Source: Blastocystis sp. Blastoise
Lineage: Eukaryota > Protista > Bigyra: Opalinata
Assembly (NCBI GenBank): GCA_039096225.1
Contig: JBBPEB010000015.1
Coordinates: 372,001-436,000 of the forward strand
Direction: 5' to 3'
Length of the DNA stretch: 64,000 bases
Below, piece by piece: positions 15,101 to 25,714 of the stretch. A program made the translations under genes and the position numbers. The stretch's first letter is position 1. Each line of letters starts with the position of its first letter. The notes under the pieces were generated by a model. That model worked only from the letters and a program-made list of their open reading frames with translations, was not told the DNA's origin and ran no database searches.

Positions 15101-15259
15101 CAAATCAACATACAGATCAACCCAATCCTTTTCACACACGTTACCATATATCCTTTCTAATTTACTAATATTATATCATCTATGAGATCAATTCTTATAT
15201 ATATTTTCCTTAATAGTCACGTTGTTGTCACTTCAGAACATAACTCTCTTAATTGGTAA
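12181..15259 (+). CDS. NAR1: Cytosolic Fe-S cluster assembly factor NAR1/NARFL (iron-only hydrogenase-like)
   Basis: DLNDFINPSLEC, VSLNDCLACSGCVTSAE, TSACP, KSPQQ, CYDKKLEA, YGYRNLQN, ELMACPKGCLNGGGQ, HTRYH...NW. Confidence 0.95.
15148..15220 (+). other. U12-type AT-AC intron in NAR1
   Basis: 5' ATATCCTT, branch TTCCTTAAT just upstream of 3' CAC; removal joins HTRYH|VVVTSEHNSLNW*. Confidence 0.9.
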
Positions 15260-21614: not shown

Positions 21615-22979
21615 TTATATTTATAGAGTGTATCGATATTCACGGAAAAATCACAGAATTAGGTCGAAAAGTATCCTCTCTTCCTCTTGACCCTACTCTT
21701 GCTAGGTCCTTGTTGATTTCCCATGATTATGATTGTATTGATGAATGTATAAAGATAGCTGCTATGCTATCTGTAGAAAACATATATTATTCTGTGTCAA
21801 ACAATGAAATCCGAACTATGAAAGGTCTTGAAACAAGGCAAACTCAAATAAAATCAATGAATTACCGTGGGGATCAAATCACTTTATTAAACGTGTATTT
21901 TATTATTTTATTATTTTGTTTTTCATTTTTGTTTTTATCATTAATTATATATATATAATTCTTAGTTTCAATAATTATATGAAGAATGGAAGAAGTAGAG
22001 AATGGTGTGAAGAGAATTATGTTCATCAACGAGCTTTAGAGCAAACATATAATATCTATAAACAAATCAAAGAAATCATGCAAACCGTATATATATTACA
22101 TATTATAAATATATTTTCTTATTTATTATTCAATGATTATTAATATCATTATATTTATATATTCTAAAATATTATATTATAATAATTAATACATATTAAT
22201 AACATTATATTTATATATTCTAAAATAGTATATTATAATAATTAATAAATATTAATAACATTATATATATAGACGGATATAAGCATTCAACCTTCTTCTC
22301 TTCCTCTCAATACATTATATGATAATATAAGTACTGCTCTTTGTAAAGGATATATGTTTAATATAGGGAAACGTCTTATGAATGGGATGTATCGAACTGT
22401 AGTAGATCTTCATGAAGGAGGAGGAACTAGGTATATTCTCAAAACATTTCTCTATTATATATTCTTTTAAATTACATTTATTTCATTTATATAATTTCAT
22501 TTTTTTCTTCTTGAATTTTATATTTATGTATTTAGAATTGGATTATTACATCCATCATCCGCATTATCTTTCTTAGGACAAACACCTGAATATATTGTCT
22601 TTAATGAAATCGTTCAAACATCAAAATTGTTTTTCAGAAACTGTATAGAAGTCAATGAAAATACAGTTATTGATGTCTGTAAGAAAATCCAAGAAATACG
22701 AGACACTGTTTTTGACCCAGATGATAACAAGGACTTTATTTTAGATCCAAAAGATATAGTTACAACTGAGATTCCTGTAGAAATGCCAGAAAAAAAAATT
22801 GAACCCATTGTTAATAAATCTTCTGTAACTCAAGATATGTTTTTTATAATTAAAGATATTCATATTTAATTGAAAATCACACATTTTATTACTTAGATAT
22901 GTTGAATGCTGCTCGTGAGAGATATCTCAAGAAGAAGATGGAGGAAGAAGCAAAAAAAAAACAAAAAAAAAGAAAATAA
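19234..22979 (+). CDS. DHX40: DEAH-box RNA helicase, DHX40-like (about 14 exons)
   Basis: GETGSGKSTQ, SQPRRVAA, TDGCLMRE, DEAHERS, TSATL, TNICETSIT, QRAGRAGR, LHPSS; C-terminal AARERYLKKK resembles the DHX40 tail. Confidence 0.8.
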
Positions 22980-23345: not shown

Positions 23346-25714
23346 ATGATGCTGGTATATATTTGTTGTTCGTAATTTATTAATTCACTCTTATAGAAAT
23401 GTGCAAGCGCTGTTAAGGTTGTTCCTCAAGTATTTTAGTCCTATTCTTCCTATGTTCTTAATTAATTCACTTTTTCTTCTAGTTTGCTAAGGGAATGGCA
23501 ACCAAGCCTTTTGTATATCAAGATATCTTTGACCACGCTTTCCCTGATACAACCAAATATCGTAAGATTACTGGTGATTATGTATCTACTATCAACGTTG
23601 ATGGTAAAAAGATTCTTAAGATTGCTCCTGAAGGTTTAACGTATGCTTTTATTATTTTTTTATTATTTATATACTTGTTTTTATTTTTTATTATTTTTAT
23701 TATTTATTATTTTTTATTATTATTTATTTTTTTATTGTTTTTATTATTTGTTATTTATTATTTATTATTATTATTATTTATTATTATTTATTATTTATTA
23801 TTTATTATTTATTATTATTTATTATTATTTGCTATTATTTTTTATTATTTATTATTATTTATTATTATTTATTATTATTTATTATTATTTATTATTATTT
23901 ATTATTATTTATTATTATTTATTATTTTAACTATTTGCTATTTTATTTGTATGCAGAATCTATTTCATCTAATTATTTCATTTATATATATATACTTTAA
24001 TGTCTCAAACTGGTATGAGTGAAATTGCTCATTACTTAAGATCTTCTCATTTACAATTCCTTGCTAATATTCTTGAAGATCCTGAAGCTTCTGATAACGA
24101 TAAATTTGTTGCTACTAATCTTTTAAAGAACTCTGTTGTTGCTGCTGAAAAGAAACTTCCTACTTGTCAAGTATATATATACCTATTTTATATATTCATT
24201 AATATTATTAAAGTTATTGATATTATTAAAGTTATTGATATTTATAAAAGAAATAGATTAGTTTTATATGAATAGTGACTATTTATATATATATATATAT
24301 AGGATACTGGTACTGCCATTATTATGGGTAAGAAGGGTCAATATGTTTGGACTGATGAACAAGATGCTTGCCATCTCTCCAGAGGTGTTTACATGTTTCT
24401 ATTCTATATATATATTAAATATGACAATTATATATATTATTTCTTATATATCTATATTGTATCCTATTGTAATAATCTAATTCTTTATTTGTTTCTGTTT
24501 ACAATGCTTATACTCAATTAAATTTAAGATATTCTCAGAATGCTCCTCTTGATATGTATAAAGAAGTAAACACAGGTACTAATCTCCCTGCTCAAATTGA
24601 TTTATTCTCTATTCCTGGAAATGAATATAAATTCTTCTTTATGGCTAAGGGTGGCGGTAGTGCTAATAAGACTTATTTATTCCAAGAAACTAAAGCTTTA
24701 TTAAATCCTACTACTCTTCTTTCTTTCCTTGATAAGAAGATTAAGACCTTAGGTACTGCTGCTTGTCCTCCTTATCATTTAGCTATCTGTATTGGAGGTA
24801 CTTCTGCTGAAACTTGTCTTAAGACTGTTAAACTTGCTTCTGCTAGATATCTTGATGATATGTATACTTCAGGTAATGAATTTGGTCGTGGTTTCCGTGA
24901 TCTTGAATTAGAACAAACTGTTTTAGATATGACTCGTAAAATGGGTATTGGTGCTCAATTTGGTGGTAAGTATTTCTGTCATGATGTACGTGTCATCCGT
25001 TTACCTCGTCATGGTGCTTCTTGCCCTGTAGCTATTGGTGTTTCTTGCTCTGCTGATAGACAATGTGTTGGTAAGATAAATGAAGAAGGTATTTTCGTAG
25101 AAGAATTAGAACATAATCCTTCTAAGTTCGCTACTGGTATTAAACCTGATGATGAATCTAAAGTTGTTAAAGTAGATTTAAATCAACCTATGGATCAACT
25201 TCTTAAGATCTTTACTAAATATCCTGTTAAGACTCGTTTCAGTCTCAATGGTACTATTATTGTAGCTAGAGATATTGCTCATGCTAAGATTAAGGAACGT
25301 CTTGATAATGGTGAAGATGTACCTCAATATCTTAAGGATCATATAGTCTATTATGCTGGTCCTGCTAAGACTCCTGAAGGTTATGCTAGTGGTTCTTTTG
25401 GTCCTACTACTGCTGGAAGAATGGATCCTTATGTTGATTTATTCCAAGCTCATAGAGGTTCTATGATTTCTCTTGCTAAGGGTAATCGTTCTCAACAAGT
25501 TACTGATGCTTGTAAGAAACATGGTGGTTTCTATTTAGGCTCTATTGGTGGTCCCGCTGCTATTCTTGCTAAGGAATCCATTAAGAAGGTCGAATGTCTT
25601 GAATATCCTGAATTAGGTATGGAAGCTGTTTGGAAGATTCAAGTTGAAAACTTCCCTGCTGTTATGCTTGTTGATGATAAGGGTAATGATTTCTTCAAAG
25701 GACTCTTAAACTAA
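23346..25714 (+). CDS. Class I (Fe-S) fumarate hydratase with short N-terminal organellar presequence (6 exons)
   Basis: [54 protein letters not shown]; [20 protein letters not shown] leader from two mini-exons (23346-23354, 23397-23429). Confidence 0.95.

Follow-up and report, generated by a model that had tools for sequence, protein, structure and literature searches.

The tortoise isolate Blastocystis sp. 'Blastoise' has a genome of 33.3 Mb in 34 contigs, and a 64-kb stretch of it (C4:372001-436000, GC content 23 %), referred to here as the window, carries a class I fumarate hydratase (fumarase) gene whose fifth intron, 110 nucleotides (nt) long, does not have GT-AG ends. For the Russian-tortoise isolate Rus-B, the genome description gives 33.3 Mb and 23.1 % GC (Lind et al., PMC10690189). 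The deposited NCBI protein P0001 (WA158_000987, 'hypothetical protein', Blastocystis sp. Blastoise; 558 amino acids (aa)) was classed by score as a class I fumarate hydratase and was recovered from six exons of the window, with 100 % identity, by a purpose-written exact protein-to-genome splice mapper (Table 1). Fumerase and Fumerase_C domains were found in the large exon (24503-25711), and exons 24303-24392 and 24503-25711 together give P0001 exactly, that is, with the 110 nt removed as deposited. A search of public assemblies for the exact product of the exon 6 open reading frame returned no match.

The 110-nt segment has a GC content of 15 % and lacks any AG; it starts with ATGTTTCT and ends with GTTTAC. 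Its removal joins ...LSRGVY to the downstream conserved fumarase residues, and read-through meets a stop codon. Both borders carry the sequence TGTTTACA, and because the bases flanking its two copies differ (G and C before, T and A after) the repeat is exactly 8 bp long. Nine cut registers are therefore equivalent (TG-TC, GT-CT, TT-TG, TT-GT, TA-TT, AC-TT, CA-TA, AT-AC and TG-CA), among which AT-AC is the only one with an end pair known to be compatible with U2-type splicing. Of random position pairs spaced 110 nt apart in the window, 0.6 % had a junction repeat of at least 8 nt, and 0.07 % when the donor lay in coding sequence; the junction repeats of the canonical introns in the window measured 0-6 nt, with a mean of 1.5 (15 measured of 18 catalogued). 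An earlier sequence-only reading had described an AG-free 110-nt intron with an 8-bp border repeat, and the sequence, the splice map of P0001 and the conserved frame all agree with that description. It had also held that fumarase homology could be restored only by removing 110 nt. The conserved frame does need this removal, but canonical in-frame GT-AG pairs are present (GTTTCT...TTTAAG and GTTTAC...CTCAG), so the claim was too strict as worded; the deposited model uses neither pair, and both would delete conserved residues (8 or 14).

Sixty codons around the junction were compared with a cDNA-like contig of the nearest relative (L004), and 56 of 60 aa but only 136 of 180 nt were identical, which indicates purifying selection on both junction flanks. 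The genome contains one class I fumarase locus. Its three FumaraseC_C loci score as aspartate ammonia-lyases rather than fumarases, and a search of the whole genome for the exon 5-exon 6 junction without an intron found none. A second or processed fumarase copy, which in the sequence-only reading would have made this gene a candidate pseudogene, was ruled out on these grounds. It was confirmed that the segment has to be taken out of the genome's only fumarase gene for the conserved frame, and its reading as a real intron was supported. The three aspartate ammonia-lyase genes (C16:664636, C16:668860 and C2:934458; L029, L030) are intron-less, encode 510-529 aa and are of bacterial type by score, and two of them are on opposite strands, 4 kb from each other.

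P0001 requires both the 110-nt removal and a GT-AC intron 3. To our knowledge, BRAKER-type predictors and others that admit only canonical sites are not expected to emit GT-AC introns. The RPL17 model of the same annotation (P0241) fell back on cryptic GT-AG sites, with the loss of conserved residues (YLS) and the skipping of the whole last coding exon. According to the tortoise-genome paper, junctions were retained in the annotation only if at least three RNA-seq reads covered them, with preference given to 'strictly RNA-seq supported introns' (PMC10690189). Because the pipeline was filtered by RNA-seq, a GT-AC intron is unexpected from a predictor and the RPL17 model reverted to GT-AG, the fumarase junctions in P0001 most likely derive from transcripts.

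The fumarase gene was fetched and mapped in subtypes ST1, ST3, ST4 and ST7 and in the nearest relative lineage of Blastocystis, for which genomic contigs (L017-L021) were used alongside the cDNA-like contig (ENA ERZ13405077 and ERZ11466806; Logan SRR18693169 and SRR35032007). This relative shows 88 % aa identity, has a genomic GC content of 46 % and is syntenic with the tortoise strain over DHX40, fumarase and MAD; its fumarase gene contains 13 introns of 30-34 nt, of which 12 are GT-AG and one is GC-AG. All five fumarase introns of the window are at positions common to this relative. At the intron 5 site the relative reads AGAGGTGT/GTATGT...CTCTAG/CTAC (slashes mark splice positions), ST3 and ST4 have GT-AG introns of 28-30 nt at the same phase-2 position, and ST1 and ST7 have none there; the presence or absence of the intron in related species had been named in the sequence-only reading as a check. 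The ancestral GT-AG position falls within the window repeat, as TGT/TTACA, and at this register the opening five bases of intron 5 are those of exon 6 (TTACA) and its closing three bases are those of exon 5 (TGT). Given that the relative, ST3 and ST4 each have a canonical intron at a position within this repeat, intron 5 is on this comparison an old, formerly canonical major-type intron that has lost its GT and AG, and not a fresh insertion. Word searches for proteins of the other two tortoise isolates surfaced none.

Intron loss has been heavy in the tortoise lineage: window exon 6, a single exon of 1.2 kb, has none of the eight introns that follow one another in the corresponding part of the relative's gene (L019/L020), the window DHX40 gene lacks six of the relative's 19 introns, and NECAP lacks one of four. 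The fumarase presequence (window 23346-23482) is encoded by two mini-exons of 9 and 33 nt, and both of their intron positions are common to the nearest relative.

Splicing signals of the major (U2) and minor (U12) types were compared. The U12 5' site RTATCCTTT matches ATGTTTCTA of intron 5 at four of nine positions. The best match to the branch box TTCCTTRAY in intron 5 is seven of nine (TTCTTTATT, 14 nt from the end), and this carries no weight because seven of 15 canonical introns have an equal match. The absence of the U12 consensus noted from the sequence alone was thus upheld. A textbook U12 AT-AC intron does occur in the window (Table 1), with an unusually short distance from branch box to 3' end. 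Features of the major type were found instead. When the 3' ends of 15 canonical and three odd introns were compared, most canonical introns proved to have a branch-like motif resembling the CTAAT of intron 5 at a distance of 20-24 nt from the end, and fumarase intron 3 has one at 23 nt. The pyrimidine tract of intron 5 was the strongest of 19 scored, the 18 canonical introns having 45-75 %. The U1 small nuclear RNA (snRNA) of the genome has a standard 5' end. Minor snRNAs are also present, with U11 (62.9 bits) and U6atac (63.8 bits) above the cut-off and a U12 candidate (46.8 bits) below it, in which the branch-binding box GUAAGGAA is intact; comparison of U11 and U6atac with the intron 5 5' site gave wobble pairs only and was not decisive. 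AT and AC ends in one register, a U2-type branch-like motif and a pyrimidine tract are together what is found in U2-type AT-AC introns, and this type, put forward in the sequence-only reading, became the leading explanation, with the U2-type introns of the relatives pointing the same way.

Intron 5 is not the only intron with unusual ends. Through synteny with the relative's contig L020, 13 DHX40-like, three MAD-like and four NECAP-like introns (the last elsewhere on C4) were mapped, and the DHX40-like junctions were read pair by pair against the relative; codon-usage and Pfam scans of the other window genes found no conserved multi-exon genes fit for junction mapping. Four of the 25 introns mapped in the genome were non-canonical, in a small sample in which the two fumarase junctions are backed by the deposited model and the others by conservation. 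Fumarase intron 3 is located at the position of a GT-AG intron in ST1, ST3, ST4, ST7 and the nearest relative. Its 5' site GTATGC is intact, its last base is C where the five relatives have G, and only the registers GT-AC, CG-TA and AC-AT are possible, exon 3 also ending in AC. In the last DHX40-like intron, the first seven nt (ATATGTT) are identical to the first seven of the next exon, giving a 9-bp repeat (AG/ATATGTT), and the two introns that the relative has immediately upstream of this site have been lost in the tortoise gene. The relative is uninterrupted at the site of the NECAP-like intron, which may be either lineage-specific or lost in the relative.

Two RPL17 paralogues, outside the 25-intron sample, gave further examples. 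Copy A has an intron CTATGT...TATAC (CT-AC) and copy B an intron GTATGT...TATAC (GT-AC), and only the AC site keeps the conserved GRIGP/YLSHPAHIE junction and its PYLSHPAHIE motif. In copy B the GT-AC intron contains a branch-like motif, CTAAC, with a long pyrimidine tract after it. Copy A has its last intron within a 6-nt CTGAAC repeat, and copy B has GT and AG available there. Across the odd introns a single pattern was observed: wherever the first base is odd, it matches the base that opens the following exon (copies of 5, 7, 2 and 4 nt), and wherever the last base is odd, it matches the base that closes the preceding exon (copies of 2, 2 and 3 nt). In canonical introns no more than the usual AG/G echo is seen. 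This suggests that splice-site rules are relaxed in this lineage. The sequence-only reading had proposed a distinct intron class; intron 5 does group with other odd-ended introns (GT-AC, CT-AC and AT-AG), but these are major-like and do not point to new machinery.

Table 1. Features discussed in the text. Positions refer to the window unless a contig is given; slashes mark splice positions.
Feature	Position	Strand	Description
Whole fumarase gene	23346..25714	+	6 exons, 5 introns: GT-AG, GT-AG, GT-AC, GT-AG, AT-AC
Fumarase intron 1	23355-23396	+	GT-AG
Fumarase intron 2	23430-23482	+	GT-AG
Fumarase intron 3	23641-23995	+	355 nt, GT-AC
Fumarase intron 4	24171-24302	+	GT-AG
Fumarase exon 5	24303..24392	+	Class I fumarate hydratase gene; splice map of P0001
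Fumarase intron 5	24393..24502	+	Phase 0 intron of 110 nt in AT-AC register; Tyr codon before, Asn codon after
Fumarase exon 6	24503..25714	+	Including stop codon; single exon
Repeat TGTTTACA, upstream copy	24386-24393	+	Ancestral splice position after third base (24388)
Repeat TGTTTACA, downstream copy	24496-24503	+	From sequence
CTAAT branch-site-like motif	24477..24481	+	Second A (24480), the putative branch point, 22 nt before last intron base
Polypyrimidine tract	24482..24500	+	Last 20 nt before AC 85 % pyrimidine
Textbook U12 AT-AC intron	15148-15220		ATATCCTTT ... TTCCTTAAT; branch box 7 nt from AC end; 5' site 9/9
Last DHX40-like intron	22835-22896		AT-AG; exact position of the relative's GTACGT...GAGTAG intron
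NECAP/DUF1681-like intron	C4:334430-334526 (L031)	-	97 nt; no GT near 5' end; 6-nt repeat AG/AGAA
RPL17 paralogue (L028)	C32:537798-541169	+	
RPL17 paralogue (L027)	C29:1058862-1062248	-	

The explanation favoured here, which we consider evenly poised between right and wrong, is that intron 5 is a major-spliceosome (U2-type) AT-AC intron, removed by a spliceosome that in this lineage tolerates C as the last base and a base other than G as the first. Its ancestor would have been an ordinary short GT-AG major-type intron that followed GGTGT in a valine codon. In the AT-rich lineage this intron would have lengthened to 110 nt while the G-containing dinucleotides at its two ends disappeared, its ends coming to echo the far exons (TTACA of exon 6 and TGT of exon 5), and these echoes would have created the 8-bp repeat and with it the ambiguous cut register. 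The major spliceosome would now cut in the AT-AC register, which is displaced 4 nt downstream from the ancestral site, guided by the CTAAT motif and the very strong pyrimidine tract, with an A(first)-C(last) pair substituting for G-G. Such A-C end pairs function in U2-type splicing (PMC1557818). The copies of the far exons may have arisen by a 4-nt slide that left the mRNA unchanged. Alternatively, spliced RNA or cDNA may have paired across the intron and converted its end bases, as an aborted intron loss; conversion fits the adjoining blocks of lost introns for intron 5 and DHX40, but not fumarase intron 3.

Several points weigh against this explanation. The deposited model and conservation are the grounds on which removal of the segment from RNA is deduced. 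For both sites to slide by 4 nt through single point mutations, a frameshifted intermediate would be needed, and the slide does not explain the three extra repeat nucleotides (TGT). In the AT-AC register, pairing of ATGTTTCT with U1 is poor, and its +3 base is G, which occurs there in one of 18 canonical introns, the other 17 having A. Positions +3 to +8 of this register score 1.3 bits, against a canonical median of 4.4 (range -3.1 to 5.8), which corresponds to the 92nd percentile of random sites (local U2 consensus GTAT[A/G/T]T); the AC-TT register scores slightly higher (2.6 bits), and the 5' site is poor in every register. The weight matrix for the 5' site is itself weak and cannot settle the register, because local introns start with TA repeats. 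A minor spliceosome, moreover, is present (U11, U6atac and the U12 candidate) and tolerates odd ends.

U2-type AT-AC introns (AT-AC II) were reportedly described by Wu and Krainer in 1997 in human SCN4A and SCN5A. Like intron 5, introns of this type have AT-AC ends and a pyrimidine tract without a U12 5' site or branch box, show A(first)-C(last) in place of G-G, and occur alongside or derive from GT-AG introns (Sheth et al. 2006, PMC1557818). Those known fit the U2 5' consensus except at +1, whereas that of intron 5 is weak, and intron 5 is shifted 4 nt from the ancestral site within its repeat. They account for about 0.003-0.008 % of introns, in contrast to the four of 25 mapped here.

A degenerate or hybrid U12-type AT-AC intron, produced by a U2-to-U12 switch or by decay of a U12 intron and cut by U11, U12 and U6atac, is an unlikely alternative. 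Blastocystis is rich in AT-AC minor introns, which have been described in its human subtypes (Gentekaki et al. 2017, PMC5608401; Larue and Roy 2023, PMC10639083), and intron 5 shares with most of these its ends and phase 0, in a genome that has minor snRNAs and a U12 candidate with an intact box. In addition, with one G-U wobble U12 could pair with TTCTTTAT, located 14-15 nt from the 3' end, wobble pairs with U11 would survive C-to-T changes at +5 and +6, and minor splicing accepts varied end dinucleotides (PMC1557818). Yet intron 5 has neither the ATATCCTT 5' site of the published introns nor a TCCTTAAY box near its 3' end. Its 5' site agrees at fewer than half the positions that match in the window's own U12 intron, its branch-like match is common among canonical U2 introns, its pyrimidine tract is a U2 feature, and the orthologous introns of three relatives are plain GT-AG introns of U2 type, 28-34 nt long. 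Somewhat less probable is that the assembled copy is never spliced, being a null allele or very young pseudogene, and that the joined RNA came from a second allele, one lacking the 110 nt or having GT-AG ends, or arose by template switching of reverse transcriptase at the 8-bp repeat. Direct repeats at apparent non-canonical junctions are a classic sign of template switching, the gene has two splice-site lesions (introns 3 and 5), and the RPL17 model P0241 demonstrates that the deposited annotation is not always true to transcripts. However, the gene is single-copy, encodes the only fumarase and is free of other lesions, and with four of 25 introns non-canonical a haplotype carrying so many dead sites would be non-functional throughout the genome. 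Both old RPL17 paralogues retain the AC end in introns that have diverged elsewhere, the 2-nt repeat of intron 3 is too short for template switching, and random decay would not produce copies of far exons at intron ends.

Recent insertion into an intron-less junction, of filler DNA at a staggered break or of a small transposon with an 8-bp target-site duplication, is an improbable origin. The repeat does resemble such a duplication, the loss of the eight introns just downstream means that the junction might have been cleared beforehand, and the NECAP-like odd intron with its 6-nt repeat has no counterpart in the relative. The repeat, however, spans precisely the site at which the relative, ST3 and ST4 have a GT-AG intron, a coincidence roughly estimated at 5-7 %, and all five introns of the gene are at shared positions. 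No terminal inverted repeats were found on the 110-nt segment, and a search of the whole 33-Mb genome with the segment and its flanks gave only TA-rich low-complexity partial matches, none of which reached the ends. The insertion-derived origin entertained in the sequence-only reading is not supported by these results, and a mobile element, introner or miniature inverted-repeat transposable element was rejected as the source: the segment belongs to no repeat family, has no inverted ends and occupies a site with a canonical intron in relatives. In Daphnia, introns flanked by short direct repeats were reportedly described by Li and colleagues in 2009 and read as a footprint of double-strand-break repair; intron 5 resembles them in having a short direct repeat at both borders, whereas the Daphnia introns are new GT-AG introns at new positions and intron 5 is at an old position and has lost its GT and AG. 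Least probable of all is non-spliceosomal or repeat-guided excision, as proposed for the nonconventional introns of euglenids, in which the border repeats would define the cut. Copies of the far exon at every non-canonical intron mapped would fit this, as would the variable non-GT-AG borders, short direct repeats and ambiguous cuts of euglenid introns (PMC3935182, PMC4770533, PMC12621601) and the 3-5 nt direct repeats at borders of the many non-canonical introns, alongside introner elements, in the Amoebophrya genome (Farhat et al. 2021, PMC7789003). The 8-bp repeat makes intron 5 comparable in its borders, but the ends of euglenid introns pair by folding, and in intron 5 no secondary structure joining the ends was found beyond that of shuffled sequences (minimum free energy -12.8 kcal/mol against a shuffle mean of -14.3, z = 0.54). 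Amoebophrya introns have inverted repeats of 8-20 nt and form repeat families in a genome without U1, whereas intron 5 has neither and U1 is present in this Blastocystis genome. In intron 5, moreover, the branch-like motif and the pyrimidine tract are normal for the major type and a canonical ancestor is evident, and GT-AC introns with repeats of only 2 nt exist. We know of no candidate machinery for such excision. A structured or self-splicing RNA was ruled out by the fold and by an Rfam scan of the window in which a tRNA was the only match.

Beyond the U2-type reading of intron 5, a broader proposal is offered tentatively; it is clearly the more doubtful of the two. The tortoise clade may have a sizeable class of major-type introns without one or both terminal Gs (AT-AG, GT-AC, CT-AC, AT-AC and others), about one in six in the present sample, whose ends were copied from the far exon by a templated event, namely aborted reverse-transcriptase-mediated intron loss, and which are spliced by a spliceosome no longer strict about GU...AG. 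Full-text literature searches found no description of such odd-ended introns in Blastocystis, the closest precedents being U2-type AT-AC introns and the nonconventional and non-canonical introns of euglenids and Amoebophrya; the tortoise-genome paper reports longer introns, and term searches of its text showed a single mention of splicing and no occurrence of AT-AC (PMC10690189). What is new here is the orthologous GT-AG intron inside the repeat, which identifies the borders of intron 5 as the lost ends of an old major-type intron.

Gene models of the tortoise clade fail where predictors admit only canonical sites, as illustrated by the RPL17 model with its missing conserved residues and exon. 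Few features of eukaryotic genes are as constant as the GU-AG rule. If about one intron in six of a culturable protist does break it, this organism would be a natural system for studying which contacts of the major spliceosome are dispensable, and also how introns slide, decay and are lost. The canonical orthologues in close relatives and the RPL17 pair, with its GT-AC and CT-AC introns, provide built-in comparisons. Far-exon copies found beside runs of lost introns could open cDNA-mediated intron loss, a mechanism debated for many years, to direct testing.

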